From assembly GCA_964106915.2 (NCBI GenBank), contig OZ066927.1: a stretch of 64,000 nucleotides of DNA; one strand, written 5' to 3'. The notes beneath the pieces were generated by a model. That model was given only the letters and a program-made list of their open reading frames with translations, made no database searches and was not told where the DNA came from. A program made the translations under genes and the position numbers. Source of the stretch: Podarcis gaigeae (lineage: Eukaryota). This document shows, in pieces, positions 29,101 through 46,668 of the stretch (within the stretch, counting starts at the first letter, position 1; each line of letters begins with the position of its first letter).

Positions 29101-32100
29101 CCTTCTACCCACCCCTGATGAAGACCCTCTTCAGAATTTTAAACCTCAGAAATGTGCGTCTGCATTTCTAATTCTCTTTATGATTTTGTCACAGGTTCTG
29201 CCTGCACTCAGGGGGGCTCCACGGACCAAGAGTGGCTGAGCAAATTCTTTGGACCCTTTTCTGCCTATGGCTCCTACTCAGATTTCACTGCACTGAAAAG
29301 CGACTTCCGTGGGGTGAGAGCGGCACAGACTTTGGAGTTTAACGTTTGTGGTGTTCTTGACTCTGGGCTGGTTCGGGCATAACACTAACTCATGGGTCAC
29401 CAATGTATTGCCCTTGAGGCCTTTCCTTGGTGCCCACAAAGCCTCTAAGGGCCCCTCCCCCATCATTGCTCCCCTTGGGCAGTTTAGCTTTAATAAGATC
29501 ACTCAAGGAAGAGTTTGGAAACTTTCACTTCCTTTTTTTAAAACCACAGTTTCCTGTGTCATCCAAACCTTGGTAAACTGTGGTTTAATCTGCACCTTAC
29601 TGACTCAGTGACGATTGGAAGCTTGGGGTGTTTGAAGATTTCTGGATTCTGAGCTTTAGCCTGGTTTCCATCCAACTCCAGCTCTGTGTTTCCAAATGCA
29701 GGTGGATTCCTTGGACCTCTTCTCCGCCACTGCCTTGGCTCAGTTGTCCACTGAAGGTCACACCATTTACAGCAGCTCAGCCATGGTGCTCATCTTCCAA
29801 GCCATCCAGAGAAAGAAGGAGCCAGAGCAATTCCTCAGCACGTACCTGGATGAGTTCAACACCCTGGTGCTGAAGGTAAACAGAAGCTTGTTGACAGACT
29901 TTTCCTCCGGGGCTGGAAACAGACTGATTTTCTGCAGTGTAACTGGAGCACTGGTGGTCAACTCCAATGGGAATGCATGGTCTGTGACCTTTGGGGTAGC
30001 TGGGAATTACTCCAGAGCAGTGGATTTCAAGCTATGTAGCACAACCTTCACCAGGATGGGGCCCTCCTGATGTTTGGGACTCGAGATCACCCTTTCCAAT
30101 TTCCTACAAACTTTCAAAACTCATGTAATTGTCAAGGGTTCTCATTGCTAGCCCATTGCTCTCCATTGTGTGAAACGTTGTCAGCTGATTTCGTTGATCC
30201 TTTTGGGTGTAGTTCCAAATCAGAAGTGCAGGGTCCCTTCATGATACCCACAGTCACACCCCCTTCTAAGATTGTACAACAATCTTATAATATTAAACAA
30301 TTAGAGTTGCATTATAACAATCAATGCAGATCTCCATTGCCCTTCAGCTACATTTACTATTTTCTGTGCGCTTACTTGGGCAAATGGTTTGGAGTGCTCC
30401 AATATCTTCATTTGGAGTGACTTAGATTGTGTTTTCCTTGAAGCTCCATTGTACGTTACAGAACTTACACACCATTCTCTTGAAACTGGAGCACCTAGTG
30501 TTGTCAGTGTTCCTAAATGCTCAGCTTTGGAGCATATGGAACAACTCGTTGGTCTTCTTCCTGTGTGCCTTCTCCAGAGTGACCCTAGGAGCCAATCCTC
30601 AGTGGCTCATTCACCTCCTTTCATTCTGATTGGCTGCAATCGGCACCAGGGGTGAGAAGATTTATTCTCAATGACTTCAAAGCTCCCCTGTTTGGGTAGC
30701 TGTAGGATGCTGGAGACCTTGCTGCAGAAATAGTAACATGTCTTCAACACTTCTGCTTCCACCTAGAACCTGATCTTCAATGAAGTCACACTTATTGCCT
30801 GGCTTTTCCTCTTGCTTCTTCCTCCAGAACCGCGGCTTGTTGAGCAATCCCAAAGTGCGGGACACCATGCTGATGCTGTCGGCAGAGATCATTTTCCCAC
30901 AGATTGCCACCAGTTCCCTGGAAGACACAAACACTTGGTTCCAGAAACTCAACCTCCTCCTCCCGGGTATCAATGGAACAATTCTTGAGCTGCTACCCCT
31001 GGGTATGCCCTGCCCATATTACCAAACCATGTAAGTAGCTGGCATACATTTACCTCAGTAGTTTTGAGGTCCCTTCACATAGTTTAATAACAGACAGAGG
31101 TTACCTCTTGTACACATTGGTGGCTACCACACAATCTGCGTCCTGAGCATCCATCCTGATTTGTTGTGGGGACACCAGATTCTGCTGCCTCGAGCAAGTG
31201 TTATTCCAACACTTTCCAGTGCATTTTACTATAATCTGGGGAAGCGGGTTTATTGTGCAAGATCTTTGACTCAACTTCATTTGAGTACAGTGGTGCCCCG
31301 CAAGACGGAAAACCCGCTAGACGAAAGGGTTTTCCGTTTTGGAGGCGCTTCGCTAAACGAATTTCTCTATGGGGTTGCTTCGCAAGACGAAAAAATCTTG
31401 CGAGTTCCCGCGGGTTTTTTTCGCTCACCCCCCTTTCCTAAGTCGCTAAGCCGCTTACCAGCTGTTCCGCTGATAAGCCGCTTCTCAGCTGATCGCTAAA
31501 AGCCGCTAGACCGCTAATAGCGCTAATCCGCTAAGCTGTCAATGGGCTTGCTTCGCAAGACGAAAAAAACGCTAGACGAAGAGAATCGCAGAATGGATTC
31601 TTTTCATCTTGTGAGGCACCACTGTAACCTTAATTTGAATACCAGTTGCTAGAAACCACAGGAGAGCAGACCGCTCTTGTGGTCGGGTCCTGCTTGCAGG
31701 TTTCCCACAGGTATCTGGGTGGTCACTTTGAGAACAGGCTGCTGGACTAGGTGGGCCACTGGCCTGATCCAGCAGAGCTCTTCTTATGTTCTTATCTTCT
31801 TAATCCCCACCCCCACAGTCTGGAAGCAGCTACACCCAGCTGAGGACACAAAGGCTGGTTTCATCAGACCACCTAGTTCAGCACTCTGGGTTGCATCCAA
31901 TGCTAGTCCTACTCAGAGGAGACTCATTGAAAGTGATGGTCATTTGGAGAACTGTTATACAAGTGATATAATGAAATTCAGTTAGAGGGGATTTGAGAAA
32001 GTCAGTTAACAATGTTATAAAAATTAGGTATTTGAAGAAGTAATTGTTTTTTGTGTTTAGTTTTTTTGTATTGAAATGTGTCTTTATTTTGTGTGTGTTT

Positions 32101-34048
32101 TGTGATGTCATTTTTGTTATAAATGTGGAAAATTAACCAAAAAAGATTGAAGAAAAAAGAAAGAAAAGAAATTGATGGCTGTGACTATCTGAGGTTCATT
32201 CATCTCATTGGGTCTATTCTGAGTAAAACTTAGTGGAACACAACCCTCTATTTCCAAAAAGATTCCAGAGCCAGTTGCAAGCTATAGCCCTCCCAAACTA
32301 TTGTTTGTTCTCTGCACCTTGAGCTCTGAGGTTCTCTGCCTCTGAATATGAGTGCTCCATTTCATTTCCATGGTTCCATAAGGCCTATACTGGAGGAAGG
32401 GCAGGTTGGATGCTAGTAAATGAATATGGTGAATAGGTGGAAAACAAGTGTGACTCAAGCCAATGTGTGGAATTGCTTGTGTTTCTTCCTCAGTGTGAAA
32501 GCGATGGATGGTCTCTACTCAACATTATCAGCCAGGAAGAGGCAAGATGTATATGACTTCCAGAAGACTTATTTAGCTTATCAGTTTGCTGATTCAGGTA
32601 AGGAGCCAAAGGGGCAGGTCTTAGGAATTTCGCCCTGAAACAGGAGTGGGGAATGGACCAAATCCTTATCTCTCCTGCCCCCTGTGGCCAAGCTTGACAT
32701 GGGAGCGTGGTGGTTCACCTGCTCATCATGTGATGCCACAGGTGACCCATTTTGTCACCATAGCTTGAAGTTCAGTCACATGGGCCAAAGTGCTGTGCTG
32801 TGAAAGCCGCAACAACCAGCTGATAGGCAGTACCTGCAAAGCCCTTTTGACAACTGGCTGATATGTGATGTCAGGTGTCGGGCAGGTGGTGGAGTCTTGG
32901 CCAAAACAGTTTCACTGGCCTGGTGGACCTAATTATTGAGCCTTCCCCCAACCTCAACCACTAGTTGCAGAGTGTTTATGAACAGTCTATCTGCTCAGAA
33001 GTTTATCTCTTCGGTGCTTGGGGCAAACTGTTTTGCTGGTTGGAAGAAGGGCAGGGAAGGAGGAGGAGGGTGTCATACACTTCCAACATTATTTCTGCAC
33101 AAATTCATCATTTGTAAGGAACCCAGCTGTGGATTTTTGTCCGTCTTCGCTTGACACATTCTCTTGCCTCCACAGGGTCAGCGTGCGATGGTGGGACTAC
33201 AGGAATCCGAGACTGGCTGACAAAGAATTTGGGGGAGTTTTGCACAGTGGCTAAGCTGAGCGAACTTCAAGCTTTTTACCCAGAACTTGATGGAGTAAGT
33301 TTTTCTCGGCACTGTGCTCCAGAGGGGGCTGCCCCACCTCTTTCCTCTGCAGGGAACAGTAGCAGCCCTGCGCAACAATGAAACTATCTTCATCCAGCCT
33401 AAAATCGCCAAAGGGAGCTGACATATCTTTAAAGGAAAGGATTGATGTTCTCTGCAGTCTCTTTATATTCCACTCTTTCTTCTCTTCTTGAGTTTTCAAA
33501 CTACTGCTTGCTTTAGAAAGTAAATACTTCAGAAATCAACCTGATTGGCATCCAAATTGTCTTTCTAAGTCCGGTGTTTCGTTTAATCAGTAGCAATCTG
33601 GGGAGCAAATTTCTCCCGTAATGGTTCAGTTTTCGATGCTTGAGTATCATCATTAAGCTGAGAAGCAGCAAAACGAAGCTGTGCGTTTTCTTCTAAAGCA
33701 AACACAGATTTTTAACACAGGCTGTGTAATGTTTTCAAGGACAGTACGGACATGGAAAATCACCCATGAATTCTGTCAAAATTTATGCAAGAAGGGTTTT
33801 TTCTGGGTGGGTATCTTCCTTACATATTTTAAAAAGAACACTGTATTTAACCATGTAACAACTATTCTAAATCAAACATGATTTATCTGTGTTTTGGAAA
33901 TGGTTGCTGATATCCAGAGCGCCGTCTCTCTACCCGCTCTTTATTCTGTGGTTGTGCTGATCTGCTCAATTAATAAAATAATAATAACGTTGAAAACAGC
34001 TGAATTGGTATGTTTCATGGTGGTGTTTTCTTTAAGAACAGACAGACA

Positions 34049-34089
<41 letters not shown>

Positions 34090-35658
34090 AATGTGGTCCT
34101 TTTAACCCCACAACCATGCCCCCAAAAGGTGGGATCAGACAAGGGATGGAGTAGAAATTCAGTTCAATTCACATTTCACTTGCAGTTTCTGCAACAATAT
34201 ATTAACAGAAACCCAGTGGTATCCTTTGAACTTTGCACTGCTCCAGATTTTGCAATGCAGTGCTCCACCCAAGCAATATACCGTATTTTTCACTCTATAA
34301 GACACACCAGACCATAAGACGCACCTAGTTTTTGGAGGAGGAAAAGAAGGAAAAAATATTCTGAATCCCAGAAGCCAGAACAGCAAGAGGGATCGGTGTG
34401 CAGCAATCTCTCTTGCTGTTCTGGCTTCTGGGATAGCTGTGCAGCCTGCATTCGCTCCATAAGAGGCACACACATTTCCCCTTACTTTTTAGGAGGGAAA
34501 AAGTGCGTCTTATAGAGTGAAAAATACGGTATACAAAAGATGGGGCAACACAGGCCTAAAAATGAATATAGGAGTAAAGGATAGCATGCAAAAACGCGTT
34601 ATACTAGGGGGAATTGCTTATCAAGGAAAACTGCATTAAAAAAGTGTATGTTAGGAGAAATATACACTAAAATGTTTCTGAATTTTAATGAAGGCTTAAC
34701 CAAAATTAAAACAAACAAACAAACAAACACAAAATGATTGGAAAAATGAGAAACGGGGAAGAATTGAAACTGATTAGGCCAGCCCTACGTGGGGATACTG
34801 AGTGTTTCGACCAACTGATTGCTACTGATTGAACTAAACTTAAAAGCATCTTTTGCCAACCTGTGGCCCTTCAGACTCTTTTTGGACTACAACTCCCATC
34901 AGCCACAGTCTTGCTGGGGGGTTGGAGGAGGTGTGGGCAGTATCTACAGCAGGAATGAATAAATGGATTTATACTCCATAAATAGGTATGTAACAGTGAA
35001 GTATCTTTATTGGTTGCATGAAAATAAATTTTACTTGGATTAGACCCATTGGAATTAATGGATTCAGGCTCATCATCTCCATTACTTTCAATGGGTCTAT
35101 TCTGACAGTAGATGCAGCCCCACGTTTCTTAGGCTGCAACCTGGGAGTATGCTCCACTTAGCTCAGTGGGGTTTATTTCTGAGTAGACCTGCACAGAATA
35201 TGCTCTGTTAACAATATTAGGCTGCAATCCAAACATGGAGGTGTGGCGAAGTTCATTTATAGCTGTGCTAGTTATGACCAATAGCACCTAGGGAAGCCAT
35301 GCCTAATTGCAGACCTGGAGCTGTGGCCAAGGCTGGATGTGCAGACAGAAGAGTGACCTGTTCTGGTCACATCCACACCACACTTTTAAAGCACTCTTAT
35401 GCCACTTTAACAGTCATGGCTTCCTGCAAAGAATCCTAGGAACTATAGTTTTCCCAAGGTGCTGAGAATTGTATATCTATGAGGTACAACTCTCAAATCC
35501 AATCACAGCTCAGTTGGAGGGAAAGTGTAGGCAAACTTTTGCTGCTTTCTCAGTCTCAATTGCCCATCTGTAAAATGGGACCAAGGCAGGAACAACCTCA
35601 CAGGGTTAAGGGGGAAAGGAAGCAAGGGTCTTCATACAAAAACAACATAGGTCCAGAC

Positions 35659-35705
<47 letters not shown>

Positions 35706-38700
35706 TTATTTTTACCCTGCCAATCTGGCTGAGTTTCCCCAGGCACTCTGTGTGGCTCCCAACAGAATTAAAAGCACAATAAAACACCAAACATTAAAAA
35801 CATCCCTAAACAGGGCTACCTTCGGATGTCTTCTAAATGTCAGGTAGTTGTTTATCTCTTTGACTCCACAGGGAGGGCGCCACTACCGAAAAGGCCCTCT
35901 GCCTGGTTCCCTGTAGCTTCACTTCTCGCATGGAGGGAGCTGCCAGAAGGCCCTCAGAGCTGGATGATGCGGAGTGGAGACGCTCCTTCTGGTATACTGG
36001 GCCGAGGCTGTTTAGGGCTTTAAAGGTCAGCACCAACACTTTGAATTATGCTCGGAAACGTACTGACCTATCCGATACAGTGCTTTGAAGCTGGCACCAG
36101 ACTCTGGAAGCATGAATTTTTAAACTGTCTATAAAGGCTCTCACTGATGGGTCGCCAAAAATGGTGAGGGTGCTTCCAGATTTTCCTTGATATCTGATCG
36201 TTTAGTCCAAGACCACCTGATTTTTAGAAAGTGGGTGTTTTTACAGAACGGGGCCACTAGCTAAGAATCTGAACTTTTGTACACACTCAAGGGCAGCCTG
36301 ATTACTAGGAAAAGGTCTAGTTTGTGCGGGTGACAGGAGTGAGCCAGCAATAAATCACACCGAGCAAGTTGGAGTAATTCTTTATTAGCAAAAACAGCAT
36401 CTGCACAGGATTGTCAGGCCTAACGAGCACAGCAGCTCATCTCCAGTAGGTCCCATGCTCCCATGAAGCAGTCACTGAGTCTGAAGGTCCCCACCTCCCC
36501 ACAGCTGCTTAAGTCCCTTCCTCACCAGGGTTTTCCCCAAGCAATTGGAGAGTGTACCTGCATAAAGCTAACTTCTCATGGTCCTTTTAATGCTTCTTCT
36601 TGTTCTGGGAGACCAAGAGGCAGGGGAGCTCATTGCAGCAGGAGGGGGAGACATACATGCCAGACTCTTCTCTGCCTCTTGGCCTCCCTCCTCTCCAGCC
36701 TCCACTTCTGCCTCCACTTCTGGACTCCTCTGCCACAGACTTACTAAACCCTGTTACCTCTTCAGCTTTCAACAGCTCCTCCTTCCAGTCTTCTTCTTCT
36801 CCTCCCTGTGTCCACTTATCATCGTCTCACTAGCAATCCCTGGGTTCTGAGCCTCAGCTGGTTCCTTCCACCATTCTTCTGTGTCCAACCAGTCCATGAC
36901 ATCAGGCAGTAGGGAGAGGAGCACACCTCAGCTGCAGAGCACCTGCTTGGCATGCCAAAGGGCCCAGGTTGGATCACCAGCATCTCCAGGTAGGACTGAG
37001 AAAGAGTCCTATTTAAAATCCTGAGAGTCTCTGCCAGTCATTGTTGATTGTACTGAACCAGATGGACCATTGCCCTGAGTAATGGGCAGCTCTGTATGTA
37101 ACCTGGAATTTGATACAGACACCCCCCCCCATTACTTATATAATAATTATCTTAAATGGCCCATCCCCATCTCTCATGCCTGGTGTGTTCCACGGCACCA
37201 TTACCACTGGGAATAGTGGAAGCCTTCAGGTAAGACAAAGCAAAGCCTGGCACAAAACTTGATAAATGGCATTTGACCGGGTGAATAGACACAAGTGAAA
37301 ACGGATTGCATAGGAAATGATGCAGACTAGGGGTGCACATCCACTTTGGATAAAGTCCAGATATGAAGCTGAAGTATTAGAGGTAGCCAGACCTCCTCTG
37401 GAAATGAAATGGGTCTTGCCATAAGCGGTCCCAAGCAAAGCAGTCTAGTTCCAAAGCTTCCAGTCTTCCTACAGTAATTCCTTATAATTAATCCGCAGAT
37501 GGAGAACCCTTCTGCCCTCAGACCAGCCCAAGCAGCAGACCTAACGGTCATTGCCCAGATGTTGCACAACTCCACCCTGGCCAGCCTGGCTCTTGGGGTC
37601 GTGAAGAACTTTAAAAACTATGGCTCGCTCCATGAATATTTGTCCAGGCTCAAAGGCCCTCCCTGCAAGGTAAGGTTGGGGGGACGGTTCCCATGCCATT
37701 TTGTGATGTGCTAAAATCTATTTCCTTGGCCACAGTCTCACTTGATCTATGTGTTCCAACTTTCTGATACCTCTCCTTGATAAGACAGTGTTCCGTTTTG
37801 TGCCTGTTTTGGATGACTTCTACACAATTTTCTGGTTCATGTTAATGAAGAGCATCTCATAGCCAAACACAGGACAGATCCACACCGTGCATTAAAACAT
37901 ATTTAATGCATATTTAAAGCATGTGTCTTTCCCCAAAGAATCCTGGGAACTGTAGTTGGTAGGGTGCTGGGAATTGTAGCTCTATGAGGTGGGACTACAG
38001 TTCCCAGGATTCTTGACGGGGGGGGGGGGAGTGAGGTACTTTAGATGCAGCCACAGGAGGGGAGAGTGTTCATGTGCTCAGATCCTGTTATGGGTTTCCA
38101 ACGGGCACCTGGTTTGTCACTGTGAGAACAGCATGCTAGACTAGATGGGCCATTGGCCTGATCCAGTAAGCTGTTCTTGTTTTCTTCAATGTATGTCCAA
38201 TATGTGTCCAATGTATGGTGTGGATCTGCCGATAGGCTCTATTTTGTGCTTTCCATCAATGTGTAATCTAGTGGAACGGGCTTGTGAAAGCCAGCTCCCT
38301 CCCTGCATTCATATCTCTTGATATGTTTTGTGACCAAGTCTGTTGAGCCTAAGCATACCACTGGCACACCCTACAGAAATCCTGAAAGCTCTTTCTTTCT
38401 CTGGACTGTTGTGAAACCCACTTCTTTCATCCCTGTGTCTTCCACGCAGAGCTACAAGCCCACAGAAATCTTGTCTATGTGTCAAGGACCTTCCCCACTG
38501 GCTGCTCTCACCCCTGAAAGCCAGCAAGAGCTTTTGGACAATGTATTTCTCTTCTTCAAGAAAGGAGGAGGTTCAATGGACTCCTCTCAGTGGAACGAAG
38601 TCTACCACCTTTTGCTCTCCAACTTCCTACCGACTCTGGGGACACCCCGCCACCCCCAATCATCCTCCAAGGCAGCATGTGAACTCTTCCAATCCACGTA

Positions 38701-41700
38701 AGTCAGAGGTGGCGTAATATGGGTGGGGGGAAAGTGTGCAAAAAAAGAAAAGGCATCTATTACTGAAAATAACGTTCAGAAATGCAGAAGAAAGGGTGGC
38801 TTGTAAAAATGTGCATATTGGGCAAGACTGAGTACAAAAACTAGGAGACATATGTACTAAAACACTTAACAATTTTCATGAGGACTTTTAAAAACAAATA
38901 AAAAAATATTGCAGACTGATGGGGTGGAATTTAAGACTAGGAAAAAATGAGAAATTGAGAGAAACCAACATTGACAGATTCATCCACCCCTATATCATAT
39001 AACCTTGAATTTTGTTGGAAATGATAGGACAGAGAGGGAGAGAGAGAGAGAGAGAGAGAGAAAGAAAGAAAGGGTAAATAGATAAATTTCTGAACAGAGC
39101 CTCCTAGAATCTTATGTTGCTCAAAAGTTCCACTCTAAAAAAATACCTCACCTGCTGCTTCAAAACTTATTTTTTAATCGCAGAATGAAGGAGATTGTCG
39201 CACTTCACCCCAGCCTTACTAAATGGCAGGAAGAACTTGCAGAGGTCAAAAGCCTTTGCCTCCTGGGTGATCAACAACCCAAACCCACAGGTAACCTTTC
39301 ATTACTAAGGGGGAGGGTCTTCCTTCAGTCTGAGGGTGACATTCCCTTCTTAGAGATCCAGTGTGGTGTAGTGGTTAACAGCGGTAGACTCGTAATCTGG
39401 GGAACCGGGTTTGCGTCTCTGCTCCTCCACATGCAGCTGCTGGGTGACCATGGGCTAGTCACACTACTTTGAAGTCTCTCAGCCCCACTCACCTCACAGA
39501 GTGTTTTTTGGTGGGGGAGGAAGGGAAAGGAGAATGTTAGCCGCTTTGAGACTCCTTTGAGTAGTGATAAAGCGGGATACCAAATCCAAACTCCTCCTCC
39601 TCCTCCTCCTCTTCTTCTTCTTCTTCTTCACCAAAACAAAGAAGAAAAGTGAGCAGAACGTAGGAAGTCAGATTGTTGGTCCTCTTAGCTGACATGTTCC
39701 CAAACTGATACTTCCTCTCTTTCCATTTGCAGCAGCAACACAAATCCCTGAAAGAACGGCAAATCACCCCCCTGGAGGTGCCAAAACTCAGAACGTTGCA
39801 AATGTCACAGGTGATGCCCCTGGGCAATCTGCGTCTCACAGTCCTGGAGATGCCACCACTCTTCCAACCGAGGTCCCTGCAGCTGCCACAGGGGCCATCC
39901 AGGGAGGTGCTTCAACCCTCTTCCCTGGGAGAGAGGCTGGAGGCATCTCTGGCAGTGCCCGAACTCTCCACCCAGGAGGCAACACAGGACGGACAACTGG
40001 ATGGTCTGCATCTTGCACTTCAAGGCAGACTACCACTCCCACCCTTGGAAGTGCCATAGGCAATACCCCTGATGTCACAAGAGGCACCACAAGCAGCGTC
40101 CCTGCTGCTCCTACAACACACAGCCCTGAGAGTGCCACGGGCCACATCCCTGGAAATTCTACAGGCACCATCCCTGGTGGTGGTACAACTCACATCCCTG
40201 GAGGCACAACCAGCAATGTTACTAGAGGAGCCTCAACTCAAATCCCTGGTGGAGCAACAAGCAACATCCCTGGTGGTTCTGCAACCAACATCCACGGTGG
40301 AGCAACAAGGAAAATCCCTGATGCTGCTGCAACTCACATCTCTGTAGGAGCAACAGGCAACACCATTGGTGGAGGTGCTGCAATTGTCCTCCCTGGTGGA
40401 GCAACAAGCAACATCCCTGGTGGTTCTGTAACTCACATCCCGGGAGCTACTGAAACTTCAGTTCATGGAAGTTCAAACAGCAACATTCCTGGAAGAACTA
40501 CAGCTCCCATTCCTGGAAGGGATACAGCATACAGTCAGGGTATCCCGGGAGCAACTTCTGTCGCTGCTGGCAATACAACTCACAACCCTGGAAATGTCTC
40601 TGGAGGTGCCCCTGCATATGCATGGACTCACCCAGTCCTATTTTTCACCTGCCTTCTCCTCCCTTGCTTTATTGTAACCATTTCCCCATAGTGCACCTCT
40701 GTTTCACAACCCACCTGCAAATTTGCCTAAATAAGAGACACTCTTTGGAATCAGGCTACAGTGTTGTGTATCAGTGTCTTTCCAGATAAGTGGTAGCAGT
40801 TTTCTAGCATCCTGCTACTCTGGAATCTTGAATCTGTTGTGTTTGATTACACAGAATATATTTATCATGCAATAAATCATCCGTCCAGCCAATGGTGCAC
40901 ATCAAAGTATTCTGGTATCCTTCTAGCTTCACATTACCGTGAAATTTGTACAAAATGGGATTGCCATATTTCAAACAGTGAAGATCTGGACAGAAAAGTT
41001 GTTGAGCTTTTTTTTTTGGGGGGGGGGACAAAATCTTTTGGAAAATCGGCAAAAGTGACACTGCCAACATGGGCTGCCATAGATCTGGATTTTCCCGGAC
41101 ATTCCCACGATTTTCGTCCAGACACTGCTGCCAACTGCAATATTCCGTGCATGTCCGGGAAATTCTGGCCTTATGGCAACCCCAAATAAAGATGTAGGTT
41201 GTTGTGTGAAAAGAGGACCATGTGTGGCTTCTGTAGAAAGCATTTCCCCTTCTTTTCTTCATAAATCTTATTTTCCTTAGTAGCAGTAGAAAGAAAGGTT
41301 TGGTGGAAGCTCTATCATCTAATATTTAATATTTATTGCTGAACATTCCTTATTTCAGAACATCTCAGTTTGGAAAAGCAGCTGGACATTGCTGGGTGCC
41401 CCCCCCCCACCATTCTGTTCCTCTCCCCTGACCCCTAACAGAGTTTAGCCCACATAGCGAGTTAAAGTTAGGCAGTTCAGTGGGACTTATTAGGCATAGG
41501 GACACACAGTTATACCAAGTCAGATCATTGGTCCATCTAACTCAGTATTGTCTCCAATGACTGGCAGAGGCTCTCCAGGGTTTCAGGCAGGGAGTCTCTC
41601 CCCACCCTATCTGGATGTGAAGCAGGGGCAGTGATGGGTGTGGCCTAAAGAGAGCGGGTGTGTCTGGGAAGAGGGTGTGGTGTAGGAGAGTCCTGAGGGC

Positions 41701-44700
41701 CACATAAAGAGGTTTGGAGGGCCAGATGTTTACAATAATACATTAGAGGGAGGGAGGGAGGAGAGTTATGGACCTCTAGAAGGAAAAAGGCACCCAGATC
41801 AAAAGGAAGGGCCAAAGAAAGGCTGGGTTTCAGGGAAGGCGGATAAAGAAGTGATGCAAGGTAGGTATGAATAATAGAGTGAAGTTCTTAAGAAGAAGAA
41901 AAGTGAGCAGAACATAGGAACACAGGAAGCAGCCTTGCACCAAGTTGGATTGTTGGTCCACTTGGCTCAGAAGTTTCCAAACTGATTATTTTCTCTCTTT
42001 TTTTCATGTTCATTTTCAGCAACGCAAATCCCTGAACAAGCCCCATATGACATCCCTGGAGACTCCCCAGGCAATATCCTTGGAGCTGCTGAAACTCAAA
42101 ATGTTACAAGTGTTCTAGCCAATTCCCCTGAAACAACCAAAGGGGGCACTTTTGAAGAAGCTGCAATTCATGGTCCTGGAGATGCCACCACTGTTGCAAC
42201 TGATGCCTCTGCTGCTGCCACAGGGGACACGCAGCAGAGGGCTGTGACCTTCATCCCTGGCAGGCAGAAAGGAGGCACCACTGGCAGTGCGGCAACTCTC
42301 CACCCTGCAGGAAGCACAGGAGGGATGCCAGGAGGGACTGCATCCTACATCTCGAGACAGACCACTACTCTCATCCTTGGAAGTGGAGGCATCTCAATAA
42401 ACTTCCTTGATGGTGCTGCAACTCACATTCCTGGAGCAGCAACTGGCGACATTCTTGGGGGTGCTGTAATTAATGTCCCAGGCAATATTGTTGGTGGCAC
42501 TGCAACTCACATTCCTATTGGGGTAACAGGCAACATCTATGGTGGTACTGTAACTGACATTGCTGGAGGTGCCACGGGCAGGATCCTTGGTGATACAGAG
42601 CCTCCCATCACTGGAGGTGCAACAGGCTACATTCCAGGTAGTGCTACAAGGCCCATCCCTGGAGAAACAGGAGGCAACCTCACTGGTGGTTTTGCAACTG
42701 ACAACCCAGGTAAGGCAACAGGCAACATAACTTCAGGTTCTGCAACTAACATCCCTGGCGGAGCAACAGGCAACATCTTTAATGGTTCTGTAACTCAGAT
42801 CCCTGGTGACACAACAAACAACATCACTGGTGGTTCTGCAACTCACATCTCTGTAGGCACAGGAGTCAATGCAGCTGGTGGTTCTGCAACTGATATCACA
42901 GGTGATGTAACAGGCAACATTCCTGGTGGTGCTACAACGCACATTCCTGGTGAAACAGGAGGCAACTTGGCTGGTGGTTCTGAAACTGGCATCCTTGTTG
43001 GTGCAACAAGCAACTTCCCTGGAGGTTCTGTAGCTCACAACTCTGTAGCCACTGCAGGCAAGACTGATGGTGGTTCTGCAACTCAGATAACCCATGGTGC
43101 AACAGGCAACGTTCCTGATGGTGCTGTAACTGACAAACCTGGAGGTGTAACAGGTGGCATAACTGGTGGTTTCCCTACTCAAATCTCTGTAGGCACAACT
43201 GGCAACATTCCTGGTGGTTTGACAGTACATATCCCTGGCCAAACAGGAGGCAATCTCTATAGTGGCTCTGCAACTGGCATCACTGGTGCAGCAACAGGCA
43301 ACATCTCTGGTAGTTCTGCAACTGACAAGCCTGATGGTGCAACAGGCAATGCTGCTGCAACTAACATTCCTGGTGGTACCATAAACAACATCCTTGGTTC
43401 TGCAACTCATGTATCTATAGACACAAGGAGCAACACTGCTGGTGGTTCTGCAACTGACATCCCTGGTGAAATGGGAGAAAACACTGCTGGTCATTCTGCA
43501 ACTGGCATCCCTGGTGGTGCAACAGGAGATGTCTCTGAAGGTTCTGCAACTCACAACTCTGTGGGCACAGCAGGCAACATTGATGGGGGTTCTATAAATG
43601 ACATTGCTAGTACAGCAACGGGCAACATTCCTGATGGTGCTGCAACAGACATCTTTGGTGGAGGAACAGGGAACAGCTCTGATGGTTCTACAACTGATAT
43701 CCTTGGAGAGGCAACAAGCAGCGTTGCTGGTGGTTCTGACACTCACATCTCTGTAGGCACAACAAGAAGCAACACTGCTGGTGCAATGGACATCCCTGTT
43801 AGAGCCATAGGCAACATCCTTGGTGGTTCTGCAACTCATATCTCTGTAGGCACAACAGGCAACCTTGATGGTGGTTCTGAAGCTGACACTGCTGGTGCAG
43901 CAACAGACAACATTCCTGATGGTGCTGCAACCGACATCCTTCATGGCATCACAGGCAACATGCTTGGTAGTGCTGCAACTCACATCTCTGTAGGCACAAG
44001 AGACAACATTGCTGGCAGGTTTGCAACTAACATACAAGGTGCAGCAACAGGCAACATCCCTGAAGCTGCTACAGCTGACATTGCTGGTGCAGCAACAGGC
44101 AACATTCCTAATGGTCCTACAACACGTGTCCCTGGTGAAACAGGAGACAACCTCACTGGTGGTTCTGTAACTGACATTGCTGGTGCAGCAACAGACAACA
44201 CCCCTGCAACTAACATCCTTGGTGGTTCTGCAACTCACATCTCTGTGGGTACAACAGGCAACAGTGCTGATGGTTCTGCAGCTGCTATTATTAATGGTGC
44301 AACACGAAACATTCCTGGTGGATTCACAACTGGCATCCTTGGAGAGGCAACAGGCAGCAGCACTGGTGGTTCTTTAACTCCTGTCTCTATAGGCACAAGA
44401 AGCAATGCTGCTGGTGGTTCAACAGAAATTGGGGGTTCAGCAGCTTACAACTCTGTAGGAACAGCAGGCAACATTGATGGTGGTTCTGCAAATGACATCA
44501 CTGTTGGTGCTACAGGTCACATCCCTGATGGTGCTGCAACGGACACTGGAATCGCAGCAACAGGAAACATACCACATGCTGCTCCAACGTTCATCCCAGG
44601 TGGCACAACAAACGATATCCTTGATGGTTCTGCAAGTGGCATTACTGTTGGTGCAACAAGCAACATTCCTGGTGGCTCTGCAACTGTCATCCTTGCAAAG

Positions 44701-45819
44701 GAAACAGACAGCATCGCTGGTGGTTCTGAAACTTACGTCTCTGTAGGCAAAACAACAAGGAGCTACACTGTTGGTGGCTCTGCAATTGGCACTGTTGGTG
44801 GTGCAACAGGCAACATTCCTGGTGGTCCTACAACACACATCCCTGGAGAAATAGGAGGCAACTTCACTGGTGGTTCTGCAACTGACACCCCCAGGGATGC
44901 AACAGGCAATATCTCTGGAGGTTCTGCAAATCACAACTCTGTAGACATGGGAGGCAACACTGATGATGGTTTTGCAACAGAGATACCTCATGGCGTAACA
45001 GGAAACACTGCTGGTGCTTCTGCACATGGCATCACCAGTGATGCAACAGGCAACATCCATGGTCCAGCAACAAGCAACATCTCTCATGGTGCTCCATCAA
45101 TCTTTGGTGGAGCAACAGGCAACATCACTGGTGGTTTCGCAACCAACATAACTGGTGGTGCCACAAGCAACATCCCTGGTAGTTCTGCAACTCAAATTCC
45201 TCATCACACAACAGGCACCATCAGTGGTGGTGATGCAACTCAGATCCCTGTTACAGCAATGGGCAACATGCGTGGTGCTGCTGCATCTGACATCCCTAGT
45301 GGCACTACAGGCAACATCCCCAATGGCTCTGCAATTGACCTCCCTGGTGGTGCAACTCCAGACATCAGTGGTGGGGATGTCACCCAAATCCCTGGTAGCA
45401 CAACAGAGGATGTATCTGGTGGTGATTTGACTCATATTCCCGGGGATGCAGCAACTCAAATTCTTGGTAGTGCAACAGGCAAAATTCCTCCTGTCTCTGA
45501 ATTTGATATTCCTGGTGGTGCAACAGGTAGTCTCACAGGTGGTTCTGTAACTCACACCCCAAGAGCAGCAACAGGCTACATTCCTGCTGGTTCTGCAACC
45601 GACATCACCGGTGGCACAACAGGCAACGGCAATGGTGGTTCTGCAATTCCCATTCCTACTGGTGCAACAGGTAACCACACTGGTGGTGCTGCAACTCACA
45701 TCCTTGGAAACACTACAGGGGACATCTATGGAGGTGCCCCTTCATATGCATGGACCCATCCAATCCTGTTTTCCACCTCCCTTGTCCTCCCTTACTTTCT
45801 TACAACTGTTTTCCTATAA
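1454..45819 (+). CDS. Giant modular GPI-anchored protein gene, tentatively mesothelin/otoancorin/stereocilin-like; 5' end lies upstream of the window; 38 internal exons plus 2 alternative terminal exons
   Basis: All 38 exons have AG/GT borders and join without stops (5704 nt = 1901 codons + 1). Four exon types recur in order A-B-C-D about ten times. Many N-glycosylation sequons and GPI-type C-termini. Family assignment is inference from the alpha-helical Leu-rich repeats, the GPI anchor and position next to CIAO3 (MSLN/MSLNL neighbour CIAO3 in human). Confidence 0.85.
1810..2430 (+). mobile_element. L2-like LINE 3' fragment
   Basis: Degenerate SRLDY..VGLPLEMVQKLQLVQDSAA coding remnant followed by 3' UTR and A-rich tail. 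Related fragments at ~25370-25690 (+), 35705-36065 (-), 55530-55850 (-). Confidence 0.7.
2597..2686. mobile_element. 90-bp hAT-type MITE
   Basis: TIR CATAGCTGTCAA..TTGACAGCTATG; perfect 8-bp TSD GTTCCCAG. Confidence 0.85.
2860..2963 (+). CDS. Modular gene exon B1
   Basis: cccag|G..G|gtaaag; ITGISRGFSEIPQERKKDCVNYIVSFLTQKSQTI; 104 nt, phase 2-1. Confidence 0.85.
3022..3714 (-). mobile_element. Internally deleted hAT (Charlie/Buster-like) DNA transposon
   Basis: TIR CAGTGGTTCTCAAA..TTTGAGAACCACTG. Minus-strand remnant CEQGFSTLTNTKEQKRKRLLCVDEEMRL resembles the hAT C-terminal dimerisation region. Confidence 0.75.
3735..3949. mobile_element. Tc1/mariner-pogo-type MITE
   Basis: TA|CAGTGGTACCTC..GAGGTACCACTG|TA. 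Confidence 0.85.
4267..4385 (+). CDS. Modular gene exon C1
   Basis: ttccag|GT..GCT|gtaagt; GPACFGQTTPRNWLLTYFGQF..FDA; 119 nt, phase 1-0. Confidence 0.85.
4766..4933 (+). CDS. Modular gene exon D1
   Basis: tccag|TAC..CAG|gtattt; YAVLDLLTPIQIG..FTRAAIQ; 168 nt, phase 0-0. Confidence 0.85.
5381..5857. mobile_element. Tc1/mariner-pogo-type MITE
   Basis: TA|CAGTGGTACCTTGGTTCTCA..TGAGAACTAAGGTACCACTG|TA. Confidence 0.85.
5928..6133 (+). CDS. Modular gene exon A2
   Basis: ctgcag|CAC..AT|gtaagt; HKMTVLPNTEV..PQNYNSFTA; 206 nt. Confidence 0.85.
7207..7301 (+). CDS. Modular gene exon B2
   Basis: gacag|T..G|gtaaca; VAGLSGAHSQMAEPFRRAVVLWIIQNLKDLK; 95 nt. Confidence 0.8.
7445..7551 (+). CDS. Modular gene exon C2
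   Basis: ttcag|AA..CCT|gtaggt; EKPSEPFSEWIKFAWGSFFKDATLGEVESIKEDFDP; 107 nt. Confidence 0.8.
8508..8687 (+). CDS. Modular gene exon D2
   Basis: tctag|TTT..CAG|gtaagt; FAVLNTLSTEQLV..LNFILEQ; 180 nt. Confidence 0.85.
8908..9116 (+). CDS. Modular gene exon A3
   Basis: ttgcag|AAG..AT|gtaggt; KNIPGIRNAEV..WFTKKL..IPLDVSFASFRA; 209 nt. Confidence 0.85.
9763..9866 (+). CDS. Modular gene exon B3
   Basis: ttgcag|A..G|gtaact; FGGFDQVFPELPEEASIQIYNLMKRIMQFQINAS; 104 nt. Confidence 0.85.
10060..10178 (+). CDS. Modular gene exon C3
   Basis: ttttag|GG..GGG|gtaagt; GTVFPGAYSNSQSFLQLLFYRF..YPNFNG; 119 nt. Confidence 0.85.
10500..10667 (+). CDS. Modular gene exon D3
   Basis: gccag|TTT..CAG|gtaatt; FEALSALTPKQMG..FNAAVNQ; 168 nt. 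Confidence 0.85.
11147..11190. repeat. (CT)n microsatellite
   Basis: Direct reading. Confidence 0.95.
11190..11565 (-). mobile_element. L1-like LINE 3' fragment
   Basis: Minus strand reads WKEDKVLTRDEWLIKMADYAEMAKMTRKIRNQEEGEFNKEW (resembles an ORF2 C-terminus), then UTR ending at the (GA)n tract. Confidence 0.65.
11889..12091 (+). CDS. Modular gene exon A4
   Basis: ttgcag|AGA..TT|gtaagt; RQLFVLPDLR..WFGTQL..IPLDIDCQSHQN; 203 nt. Confidence 0.85.
12136..12552. mobile_element. AT-rich non-autonomous DNA element, TAGGGA..TCCCTA termini
   Basis: Related degenerate copies at ~6760-7070, 18570-19010, 23290-23675, 26490-26890, 34140-34790, 38720-38990. Confidence 0.55.
12727..12830 (+). CDS. Modular gene exon B4
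   Basis: ctcag|G..G|gtatca; VQAMDKVFDRFTEGQKKAIHARIFSYLESYQADQ; 104 nt. Confidence 0.85.
12904..13260. mobile_element. hAT-type non-autonomous element
   Basis: CAGTAGTTCCCAAA..GGTTAAACGCTG termini; 8-bp TSD GATTAGAC/GATTAAAC. Confidence 0.7.
13590..13705 (+). CDS. Modular gene exon C4
   Basis: ttgcag|GG..GGG|gtaagg; GVTCSPNTNSSQWILSNYGQF..NFNG; 116 nt. Confidence 0.85.
14090..14442 (+). mobile_element. Sauria SINE (near full length)
   Basis: tRNA-like head GGGTGGCGCTGTGGGTTAAACC..GGTTCGAA and the characteristic (ACCTTT)n tail. Confidence 0.88.
14489..14647 (+). CDS. Modular gene exon D4
   Basis: ttcag|ATT..CCG|gtatgt; ISAMAELSANQLA..LNTIAP; 159 nt. Confidence 0.85.
15645..15844 (+). CDS. 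Modular gene exon A5
   Basis: cacag|ATG..AT|gtgagt; MELQSS..WFQVIF..IPLKISCDSYQK; 200 nt. Confidence 0.85.
16531..16631 (+). CDS. Modular gene exon B5
   Basis: cccag|A..G|gtaaca; LKGFNNVFANILPGKALSVFGFSKAFLTTKIKS; 101 nt. Confidence 0.85.
19092..19210 (+). CDS. Modular gene exon C5
   Basis: tccag|GC..GGA|gtgagt; GIACGRPTQSVQEWLEINLGNFSRYAQYQDL..FDG; 119 nt. Confidence 0.88.
19842..19977. mobile_element. Palindromic hAT-type MITE
   Basis: Inverted-repeat body; perfect 8-bp TSD ATCTAAAT. Confidence 0.85.
20426..20716. mobile_element. Tc1/mariner-pogo-type MITE
   Basis: TA|CAGTTATACCTTG..CAAGGTACCACTG|TA; internal CATGCGCAGA-like repeats. Confidence 0.75.
21071..21238 (+). CDS. Modular gene exon D5
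   Basis: ctgcag|ATG..AAG|gtacgg; MAVLQSLSPLQLA..FNTDANK; 168 nt. Confidence 0.85.
21560..21771 (+). CDS. Modular gene exon A6
   Basis: ttgcag|CTT..GT|gtgagt; LGITSLKEEG..VSGCDAFQA; 212 nt. Confidence 0.85.
22946..23049 (+). CDS. Modular gene exon B6
   Basis: ttcag|G..G|gtaact; VSSLSQIYSAILPTNQLGIYRTLFSYLDNQHKTT; 104 nt. Confidence 0.85.
23955..24073 (+). CDS. Modular gene exon C6
   Basis: ctgcag|GA..GGG|gtacgt; GSACTSNTGDSEAWLQDNLGAF..FNG; 119 nt. Confidence 0.88.
24673..24840 (+). CDS. Modular gene exon D6
   Basis: tacag|TTT..CAG|gtgagt; FDVRGNLTATQLA..FAALAAQ; 168 nt. Confidence 0.85.
25129..25325 (+). CDS. Modular gene exon A7
   Basis: ggcag|AGC..AT|gtgagt; SGVTFLPNTEV..PSINAT..IPCSTFKA; 197 nt. 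Confidence 0.85.
25919..26022 (+). CDS. Modular gene exon B7
   Basis: cccag|A..G|gtaggt; MAGLDGSFRHMSSDSRQDVYNFAKGYLMTKASQG; 104 nt. Confidence 0.85.
26306..26424 (+). CDS. Modular gene exon C7
   Basis: tccag|GA..CCG|gtaagt; GDPCTENTRGSLGWLTANFGSFSSLASYKDL..FHP; 119 nt. Confidence 0.88.
26942..27100 (+). CDS. Modular gene exon D7
   Basis: tttag|ATG..CAG|gtttgc; MDAVARLTPSQLA..FNVAAQQ; 159 nt. Confidence 0.85.
28152..28360 (+). CDS. Modular gene exon A8
   Basis: taaag|CAC..AT|gtaggt (in-frame alternative acceptor 6 nt downstream); HQLTQLPNLE..WFGQRL..DMSCDSLAA; 209 nt. Confidence 0.82.
28947..29050 (+). CDS. Modular gene exon B8
   Basis: ttgcag|A..G|gtaaac; VEGLNDHHANSTFENPEDIFSFIKRILEFQQQNS; 104 nt. 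Confidence 0.85.
29195..29313 (+). CDS. Modular gene exon C8
   Basis: cacag|GT..GGG|gtgaga; GSACTQGGSTDQEWLSKFFGPFSAYGSYSDF..FRG; 119 nt. Confidence 0.88.
29702..29875 (+). CDS. Modular gene exon D8
   Basis: atgcag|GTG..AAG|gtaaac; VDSLDLFSATALA..FNTLVLK; 174 nt. Confidence 0.85.
30828..31030 (+). CDS. Modular gene exon A9
   Basis: tccag|AAC..AT|gtaagt; NRGLLSNPKV..WFQKL..GMPCPYYQT; 203 nt. Confidence 0.85.
31288..31624. mobile_element. Tc1/mariner-pogo-type MITE (CpG-rich, probably young)
   Basis: TA|CAGTGGTGCCCCGCAAGACG..CATCTTGTGAGGCACCACTG|TA. Confidence 0.85.
32494..32597 (+). CDS. Modular gene exon B9
   Basis: ctcag|T..G|gtaagg; VKAMDGLYSTLSARKRQDVYDFQKTYLAYQFADS; 104 nt. Confidence 0.85.
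33176..33294 (+). CDS. Modular gene exon C9 (frame stays open past the donor to TGA at 33381)
   Basis: cacag|GG..GGA|gtaagt; GSACDGGTTGIRDWLTKNLGEFCTVA..LDG; 119 nt. Confidence 0.88.
33972..33977 (+). terminator. Candidate intronic poly(A) signal after exon C9 read-through
   Basis: AATAAA followed about 30-55 nt later by GT-rich sequence (ttggtatgtttcatggtggtgttttc). Confidence 0.4.
34049..34087. repeat. (AC)n microsatellite
   Basis: Direct reading. Confidence 0.95.
34281..34529. mobile_element. Mariner-type MITE nested in an older AT-rich element
   Basis: TA|CCGTATTTTTCACTCTATAAGAC..GTCTTATAGAGTGAAAAATACGG|TA. Confidence 0.88.
35659..35703. repeat. (TAA)n microsatellite, tail of the minus-strand L2-like fragment
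   Basis: Direct reading. Confidence 0.95.
36329..36901 (-). mobile_element. Probable solo LTR
   Basis: Minus strand begins TGTCATGGACTGG, has a purine-rich body and AATAAA ~50 nt before a ..TGTCAC end. No clean TSD seen. Confidence 0.5.
37499..37669 (+). CDS. Modular gene exon D9 (divergent)
   Basis: cgcag|ATG..AAG|gtaagg; MENPSALRPAQAADL..YLSRLKGPPCK; 171 nt. Confidence 0.8.
38450..38697 (+). CDS. Modular gene exon A10 (divergent, longer)
   Basis: cgcag|AGC..AC|gtaagt; SYKPTEILSMCQG..QWNEVY..AACELFQS; 248 nt, phase 0-2. Confidence 0.8.
39184..39290 (+). CDS. Modular gene exon B10 (last common exon)
   Basis: cgcag|A..G|gtaacc; MKEIVALHPSLTKWQEELAEVKSLCLLGDQQPKPT; 107 nt, phase 2-1. Confidence 0.8.
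39351..39630 (+). mobile_element. tRNA-derived SINE with L2-like tail and (TCC/TTC)n end
   Basis: A-box TGGTGTAGTGG, degenerate B-box, core GGGTGACC-TGGGC-AGTCAC, simple-repeat tail. Related pieces at ~24940-25015 and 48550-48760 (-). Confidence 0.75.
39733..40691 (+). CDS. Alternative terminal exon T1: ~319-aa G/T/A/P-rich stalk plus GPI signal
   Basis: Polypyrimidine tract and NAGNAG acceptor (ttgcag|CAG). Phase-1 open frame AATQIPERT..PGNVSGGAPAYAWTHPVLFFTCLLLPCFIVTISP-TAG (40689-40691). Absent from the ORF track, consistent with no in-frame start codon. Confidence 0.8.
40871..40876 (+). terminator. Candidate poly(A) signal for the T1 isoform (second AATAAA at 41185-41190)
   Basis: AATAAA 180 nt after the T1 stop. 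The second hexamer is followed by gtaggttgttgtgtg. Confidence 0.45.
40956..41183. mobile_element. MITE in the T1 3' flank
   Basis: Inverted termini GGGATTGCCATA..TATGGCAACCC. Confidence 0.6.
42020..45819 (+). CDS. Alternative terminal exon T2: ~1266-aa G/T/A/I repeat stalk plus GPI signal
   Basis: ttttcag|CA; phase-1 frame ATQIPEQAP.. continuous with ORF 42244-45819; ends GDIYGGAPSYAWTHPILFSTSLVLPYFLTTVFL-TAA. Confidence 0.85.
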
Positions 45820-46668
45820 TCCAACCTTGCTATCCACAATGTTTTGCAAAATATTTAATATTTCTTAGTAAACATTCCTTATTTCTGTACACCTGAGTTT
45901 GGAAAAGCAGCTGGATGTTTCTTGGTGCCCCACCAACTATTGTGTTTTTCCACCCTCCAAATTCTGCCTCCACCCCTTAAAGAATTCAGTCCACTTGCAA
46001 ACTTTGTGCAGGTTATAAAAAGCTAGGTCCCTTGTGCTTTTGAGAACAATACATGGTGATTTAATGTGGATATTCAATGGCCAATTGCAGAACCTTATTA
46101 GGCTCTGACACAATTGATGTGAAACAGGAACTGAGTCAGAGCATTGGTGAGCTAGCTTAGTACTGCCAGCATTGATTGGCAGCAGTTCTCCAGAGCTTCA
46201 GGCAGGGAGCATTTCCCACTCTTCCCAGGAAATACCAGAGATTGAACTTGAGACCTTCTGCATGTAAAGTGAGCCATGTTCCTTCCACAAATTCCTTCCA
46301 CAATTAGGTGGTTATCTAATGAAGGATTTTCAGCGCTCTCGCTTGCTGGTGTCTTGGGGAATGCACTCACCTTTCATTCTCTAAACGATTTTCTAAATGA
46401 TTCTTAGCTTGGATCCTTGGTATACTTGTGTGTGAATTTATCATACCCTCCAACATTTCTCTGATGAAAATAGGAACATCTTATTCCATCATCATCATCA
46501 TCATGATAAAATGAAATTTATTATTTTTTTAATTTGTACCCTACCCCAGCTACTCTGGGAGGCTACCAACATATATAAAACATATATAAAATCATAATAA
46601 AACATTAAACATTACAAAAACTTCCCTGTACAGGGCTGCTTTCAGGGGACTCGGGGGTTGCATAACTC

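Follow-up and report, generated by a model that had tools for sequence, protein, structure and literature searches.

Tandemly duplicated last exons likely offer short and long GPI-type stalks in a mesothelin-like gene of lacertid lizards

Splicing controls stalk length in several surface proteins, among them CD45, CD44 and guinea-pig CD55. It also alters the Ser/Thr-rich spacer between ectodomain and membrane in the STP region of CD46, with a functional effect (PMC2947992), and C-terminal substitutions derived from tandem exon duplication comprise 77 human events, e.g., GNAO1 and NECTIN2 (PMC8373072). The superfamily of mesothelin, MSLNL, otoancorin and stereocilin consists of GPI-anchored, helical proteins (PMC2628672). 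We analyzed a 64,000-nucleotide stretch of Podarcis gaigeae contig OZ066927.1 (hereafter the window; zero N), in which a mesothelin-like gene carries two terminal exons, T1 and T2, that would attach a short or a long repeat stalk with a GPI-type tail to one ectodomain. Alternative last exons that arose by duplication and stalk lengths set by splicing are both established classes; the combination and size proposed here were not found in the literature searched, which yielded no pair of stalk-plus-GPI last exons, duplicated and ~950 aa apart in length, no paper on these loci and none on duplicated stalk exons in reptiles.

Sequence identity of the window is 92-94% with Podarcis and ~90% with Lacerta and Zootoca; in a tree built from the duplicated blocks it clusters with P. 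raffonei, whose LOC128401859 is the ortholog of the gene (upstream exons mostly 88-100% per exon in the exon comparison). On the 3' side lie CIAO3, on the same strand, and then a HAGH-family gene; HAGHL is also named as a locus neighbor. In P. muralis, a ~6.4 kb insertion separates T2 from CIAO3 relative to the window (2410-8800 of its locus sequence), and in Sphaerodactylus a PRPS-family gene on the opposite strand follows the ortholog in place of CIAO3 (28492-35121), a local rearrangement. Purifying selection on the ectodomain repeats is clear (dN/dS = 0.17 vs P. raffonei), and AlphaFold models them as all-helical (pLDDT 93.6). Fold searches returned generic solenoids only (Z ≤ 8.6), with mesothelin (8cx3) at rank 45 (E 0.078), a sequence search of the PDB gave zero matches, and the best Atlas match was a chordate cluster without a name; sequence searches of the spliced model were run one exon at a time. 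The P. lilfordi ortholog has a putative signal peptide, and the N-terminus of the lacertid orthologs, a region outside the window, is hydrophobic as judged by eye. By the numbering of the P. lilfordi model, in which the first window exon falls at residue ~717 and B10 ends at 2621, full lengths are estimated at ~2940 aa (T1 form) and ~3890 aa (T2 form); the in-window lengths of 2220 and 3167 aa given in the original prediction were recomputed as ~2224 and ~3171 aa.

Table 1 Features of the gene within the window
Feature	Position	Strand	Description	Remark
Ectodomain	1454-33294	+	Tandem four-exon repeats (~104/119/165/205 nt; ~195 aa per unit), all-alpha solenoid	Gene start upstream of window
Composite exon	33176-33977	+	Donor 33295 (splice to B8) or read-through to stop 33379-33381, 3' UTR, AATAAA 33972-33977	Conserved UTR
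Exon B8	37499-37669	+	c-type repeat exon, phase 0-0	
Exon B9	38450-38697	+	Phase 0-2	
Exon B10	39184-39290	+	Phase 2-1; donor common to T1 and T2 (GT at 39291, phase 1)	Homologs before single stalk exon in snakes, Pogona, Varanus, gecko
Copy 1 duplicated intron end	39637-39732	+	Branch-point-like CTGAT (39705-39709), pyrimidine tract, NAGNAG acceptor (AG before 39733, second AG before 39736)	
T1 coding part	39733-40691	+	319 aa; unique head, ~150 aa of 8/16-residue repeats, GPI-type tail, stop 40689-40691	
T1 3' UTR	40692-40906	+	Invariant AATAAA at 40871-40876	
Copy 1 3' flank	41321-41453	+	Paralogous to 45850-45994	
Copy 2 duplicated intron end	41893-42019	+	CTGAT (41982-41986), pyrimidine tract, acceptor AG before 42020	4.7% variable columns
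T2 coding part	42020-45819	+	1266 aa; unique head, ~1085 aa of 8/16-residue repeats, GPI-type tail, stop 45817-45819	
T2 3' UTR	45820-46019	+	Poly(A) signal at 46014-46019	TATAAA in window

As the original prediction stated, B10 ends in phase 1 and both last exons start in phase 1 (Table 1), with the added detail that T1 read from its first AG begins A-ATQIP; this match of the two acceptors to the B10 donor is kept in 4 species. The acceptors score 9.3 and 7.5, similar to or above those of the gene's other exons, and the branch-point-like CTGAT lies ~25-35 nt upstream of each. The blocks said to be shared and the GGAP(A/S)YAWTHP tails are present in both exons, and the flanks proposed as paralogous were recovered by self-blastn, which gave blocks of 77-85%, with 39665-39752 aligning to 41942-42036 (77%), 39841-40053 to 42173-42385 (77%, E 1e-37), 40597-40690 to 45725-45818 (82%), and 41321-41405 to 45850-45934 (85%). 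Paralogy that spans intron end, head, tail and a 3' flank block supports the view that the terminal cassette was duplicated whole and in tandem. The T2 poly(A) hexamer lies ~195 nt past the stop, a distance matching that of T1, and reads AATAAA in Lacerta, Zootoca and P. muralis, AATGAA in P. raffonei and TATAAA in the P. gaigeae window. Within the B10-T1 intron, a SINE-like insertion with a CCT/CTT tail (39354-39629) adjoins the start of the duplicated unit and is absent from P. raffonei, Lacerta and Zootoca. An assembly or haplotype artefact was rejected: Logan contigs (genomic) of the source species cover both exons with zero differences, and the tandem pair recurs in three other lacertid assemblies, the copies being 20-30% apart.

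Phylogenetically, the T1 copies and the T2 copies fall into two clades (support 100/100). Paralogs are separated by a K2P distance of 0.35 and orthologs by 0.062, and the duplication is therefore estimated to be ~5-6 times older than the Podarcis/Lacerta/Zootoca split, with ~0.17 substitutions per site on each copy since then. Recent duplication or gene conversion is ruled out by the separate clades, and there was no sign of homogenisation. In the outgroups, a single stalk exon follows B10, encoding 75 aa in Sphaerodactylus, ~235 in Pogona, ~750 in Varanus, and ~1135 in Naja and Pantherophis (full interval to CIAO3 covered in Pogona and Varanus, 3-10 kb in the others); stalk length is therefore highly labile among species. 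A squamate-wide duplication was rejected, no second copy being seen at 5 outgroup loci, and Rhineura, the closest outgroup tried, gave nothing within 10 kb of CIAO3 and is uninformative for the spread of the duplication. Among the squamates sampled, the duplication appears to be restricted to lacertids, which hold a short and a long stalk version together, while each outgroup has one of species-specific length.

We further compared the region 5' of CIAO3 in P. raffonei, Lacerta agilis, Zootoca vivipara, and P. muralis, the locus sequence of the last extending only to T2's tail. Both exons are open in P. raffonei, L. agilis and Z. vivipara (T1 = 285, 320 and 315 aa; T2 = 1251, 1260 and 1155 aa, respectively), and P. 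lilfordi protein models include both T1 and T2 sequence. The claim that both frames are intact thus extends to related lacertids, except for a single T1 frameshift, a +2 shift in the Zootoca tail (~1230-1265 of its locus sequence) that shortens the hydrophobic end from 18 to 14 residues and adds no charge. Amino-acid constraint is weak, with dN/dS near 1 (T1, 0.66-0.86; T2, 0.77-1.04), which made the reading frame the informative test. Across the alignment of four species, all 23 T2 indels and three of the four in T1 were in frame, vs 4 of 18 in the 1.3-kb spacer between the exons (T2 vs spacer, Fisher p = 9e-8). With indels < 24 nt only, the small T2 indels (3-21 nt) were in frame in 18 of 18 cases (p = 2e-6). 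Under neutral expectation, the probability of zero frameshifts in T2 is ≤ 2e-9 and that of at most one in T1 is 0.04 or less. A conservative test, in which the non-coding frameshift rate was halved to discount homopolymers, predicted ~20 T2 frameshifts (observed 0) and ~5 T1 frameshifts (observed 1, P = 0.04), and simulated neutral substitution left T2 stop-free in 1.4% of runs (P = 0.014) and T1 in 13% (0.13). In the rows listed for contigs from two further organisms, coding indels measured 3, 3, 6, 6, 9 and 15 nt and non-coding ones 1 and 2 nt. In the T1 3' UTR up to AATAAA, 5% of columns vary, compared with 13% after it (Fisher p = 6e-4); in T2, 3% of columns vary in the tail, and the acceptor region is also conserved (Table 1). 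From this conservation of frame, stop, UTR and acceptor, T2 is almost certainly, and T1 very probably, translated. These results support reading-frame selection on both exons, strongly for T2 and moderately for T1, and the retention of both copies by selection agrees with the indel frame and with the conserved T1 UTR and AATAAA.

Alternatively, only one copy might be a working last exon, the other, more likely T1, being a relic left open by chance and by repeat-unit indels. The 24-bp repeats do mechanically favor in-frame indels, but those of 3-21 nt in T2, all in frame, go beyond 24/48-nt slippage; dN/dS is close to 1 in T1 and T2 and a T1 free of stops has a neutral probability of 0.13, yet frame, acceptor and stop position are intact after the ~0.17 substitutions per site accrued by each copy. 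Although the Zootoca T1 tail is frameshifted and no annotation examined shows both isoforms, the T1 UTR, AATAAA, acceptor and tail are conserved, and T1, were it a relic, would block T2 through its strong proximal acceptor and poly(A) site. We consider such a relic quite unlikely.

Mutual exclusivity of T1 and T2, as originally claimed, stood as a choice between alternative last exons and poly(A) sites, but the gene has a third possible 3' end, at 33295-33977, which had been missed. The sequence past 33295 is conserved and UTR-like (blocks of 66-81% with Pogona, Varanus, snake and gecko), and the read-through tail is short, contains Cys and is likewise conserved. Ortholog models ending by read-through occur in amphibians, turtles, birds, snakes, Pogona and P. 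raffonei, and the Crotalus tigris RefSeq set combines a read-through isoform (X3) with stalk-bearing ones (X1, X2). This end is likely to yield a secreted isoform common to tetrapods. Because the read-through UTR and AATAAA are conserved and Crotalus has isoforms of both types, the lacertid gene probably has the capacity for secreted, short-tether and long-tether forms.

Some of the same models could instead mean that B8-B10 and T1/T2 form a separate small transcription unit, the ectodomain being secreted only and the stalks bearing a 175-aa head. The read-through, with its conserved UTR and AATAAA, is where RefSeq models of P. raffonei, Pogona, Naja and many amphibians terminate, whereas models of Crotalus (RefSeq X1/X2), Pantherophis, Sphaerodactylus and P. 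lilfordi splice across 33295, where the donor is GTAAGT in five squamates, and turtles join the same donor to further repeats. An ATG begins B8 in lacertids and Varanus, but B8 lacks a signal peptide, belongs to the repeat-type exons and matches the 33295 donor in phase; a separate unit is in our assessment very improbable.

Public annotations represent the gene in fragments. P. raffonei RefSeq has only B8-B10-T1 (461 aa), as a separate gene, the Lacerta annotation has only a 1238-aa T2 model, and nothing is annotated in Zootoca; RefSeq in other lacertids splits the gene into 3-4 LOCs, and the P. lilfordi and Chelonia models fuse it to CIAO3, dropping the GPI tails. The pair of T1 and T2 isoforms is in none of the public annotations examined, and current lacertid annotations wrongly split or fuse the gene.

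T2 might also be reached via a donor inside or after T1 (phase-1 GT at 39811, or 41861), which would make T1 partly an internal exon and the two exons less than strict alternatives. The 39811 phase-1 donor scores 3.2 vs 3.5 for that of B10. The donor at 41861 is invariant, with a score of 6.2, and serves in the P. lilfordi and Lacerta models, but these look ab initio (GPI tails dropped, fused to CIAO3), no acceptor upstream of it scores > 1.6, and P. raffonei has lost the in-frame ATG before it. A long-stalk isoform would result by this route too, and we hold such a route to be very unlikely. The 41861 donor (AAG/GTAGGT) sits within a fairly conserved purine-rich stretch (41800-41890) that could influence T2 selection. 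No alternative upstream gene for T2 lies between B10 and T2, and T2 as a gene of its own, starting from the ATG before 41861, was rejected on the loss of that ATG in P. raffonei and the absence of a signal peptide.

The stalks consist of Gly/Thr-rich, also Gly/Ile-rich, 8/16-residue repeats with periods of 8/16/32/48 and columns of Ile (81 of 134 rows), Asn/Asp and Thr; the 8/16 register is present but weaker in Varanus and snakes. Mucin PTS domains are defined by Ser+Thr above ~40% over 100 residues, and the maxima per 100 residues here (37% in T1, 32% in T2) lie below that threshold. AlphaFold gave the stalk a pLDDT of 40 with scattered strands, the Atlas search with it returned zero matches, and Pfam on T1/T2 gave a sub-threshold cornifin match only. 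A protein search with T2 recovered three snake orthologs only, the lacertid models being hidden in a cluster chained by fused models. In a rule-based check (n = 8), the tails showed small-residue omega candidates, a spacer, an uncharged hydrophobic end of 14-18 aa and no cytoplasmic part; those of T1 and T2 are putative GPI-attachment signals by this pattern. Turtle orthologs end after the mesothelin domain with ~40 aa that hold 1-2 copies of a HIPG-type motif and a similar hydrophobic tail, and the T1 tail aligns with the Mauremys C-terminus (p = 0.004; T2, p = 0.06; partition-preserving shuffles). We infer that the last exon of squamates represents the ancestral GPI exon after expansion of the HIPG-type motif. 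The "roughly 4-fold different distance" from the membrane originally proposed holds as a ratio of residues, but as a distance it depends on stalk conformation, T2/T1 reach being estimated at ~2.3-fold for a random coil, ~4-fold if extended and ~7-fold over the repeat part if a beta-solenoid (range 2-7 fold); the ~2450-aa head adds its own length to either stalk.

Together, these observations suggest one gene with three 3' ends. Its ~2450-aa alpha-solenoid ectodomain would either be released as a secreted protein, via read-through and polyadenylation at the composite exon, or be spliced through B8-B10 to a last exon encoding both a Gly/Thr-rich stalk and a GPI signal. In lacertids, this last exon would have been duplicated in tandem with its acceptor and 3' flank well before the Podarcis, Lacerta and Zootoca lines separated, T1 and T2 afterwards diverging in repeat number. 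Use of the proximal acceptor and the T1 poly(A) site would give ~2940 aa with a short stalk, and skipping of T1 ~3890 aa with a long one. Selection has preserved the reading frame, the acceptor, the tail and the poly(A) signal while hardly constraining the stalk's amino acids, the pattern expected if length and character are what counts in a spacer. The model presumes that both junctions are spliced, that both tails are GPI-modified, and that a tissue-regulated choice changes the height of the ectodomain above the membrane. Alternative last-exon use of T1 vs T2 is likely in our judgment, and a ruler function of the stalk-length choice is plausible. We regard as doubtful the fuller version, a splice-switched ruler with three regulated heights (secreted, short and long) and a rigid beta-solenoid of 16 residues per turn built from the motif of an ancestral mesothelin-type GPI exon. 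If true, it would be a real splice-switched molecular ruler in a vertebrate, in a gene whose stalk length has a 17-fold range across squamates. With one head on no stalk, a 300-aa or a 1250-aa stalk, the role of membrane height may be testable in one gene, an uncharacterised one kept from fish and amphibians to marsupials. The locus may also offer a natural case of a spacer-length switch made by whole-anchor-exon duplication and, in squamates, of a mesothelin-like gene exchanging its mesothelin domain for a repeat stalk.

Compared with the mesothelin superfamily, the gene shares the plan of a helical-repeat surface protein and a locus adjoining CIAO3 and HAGHL. Its N-terminal repeats are orthologous to those of the turtle mesothelin-like giant Mauremys LOC120373936 (50-75% per exon), and its membership of the mesothelin family, as first claimed, is borne out by orthology and synteny but not by domain content: PF06060 is present in Mauremys but absent from the P. 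raffonei, Crotalus and gecko proteins and from the window exons, and the repeats show no alignment to it. The mesothelin domain follows in turtle and marsupial orthologs; in squamates the repeat stalk takes its place. The snake ('mucin-4-like', 'sraP'), Varanus, Pogona and Sphaerodactylus orthologs have the same B8-B10, phase-1 last exon, stalk and hydrophobic tail, and an 8-residue period can be detected in their stalks. Four relatives of 4400-7100 aa carry the same repeats and mesothelin-like GPI tails, and B8/B9-type repeats recur in one of them. The GNAO1/NECTIN2 class is similar in its duplicated 3' coding exon, homologous C-termini and alternative poly(A) use; here, however, the whole stalk and GPI signal are duplicated, the anchor is unchanged, and the copies differ in length by ~950 aa of repeat. 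In proteins of the CD46 type, it is internal cassette exons that are included or left out (about 30 aa in CD46), whereas here two complete terminal exons would be exchanged, and the lizard stalk is Gly/Ile-rich with strict 8/16 periodicity and 24-26% Ser+Thr.
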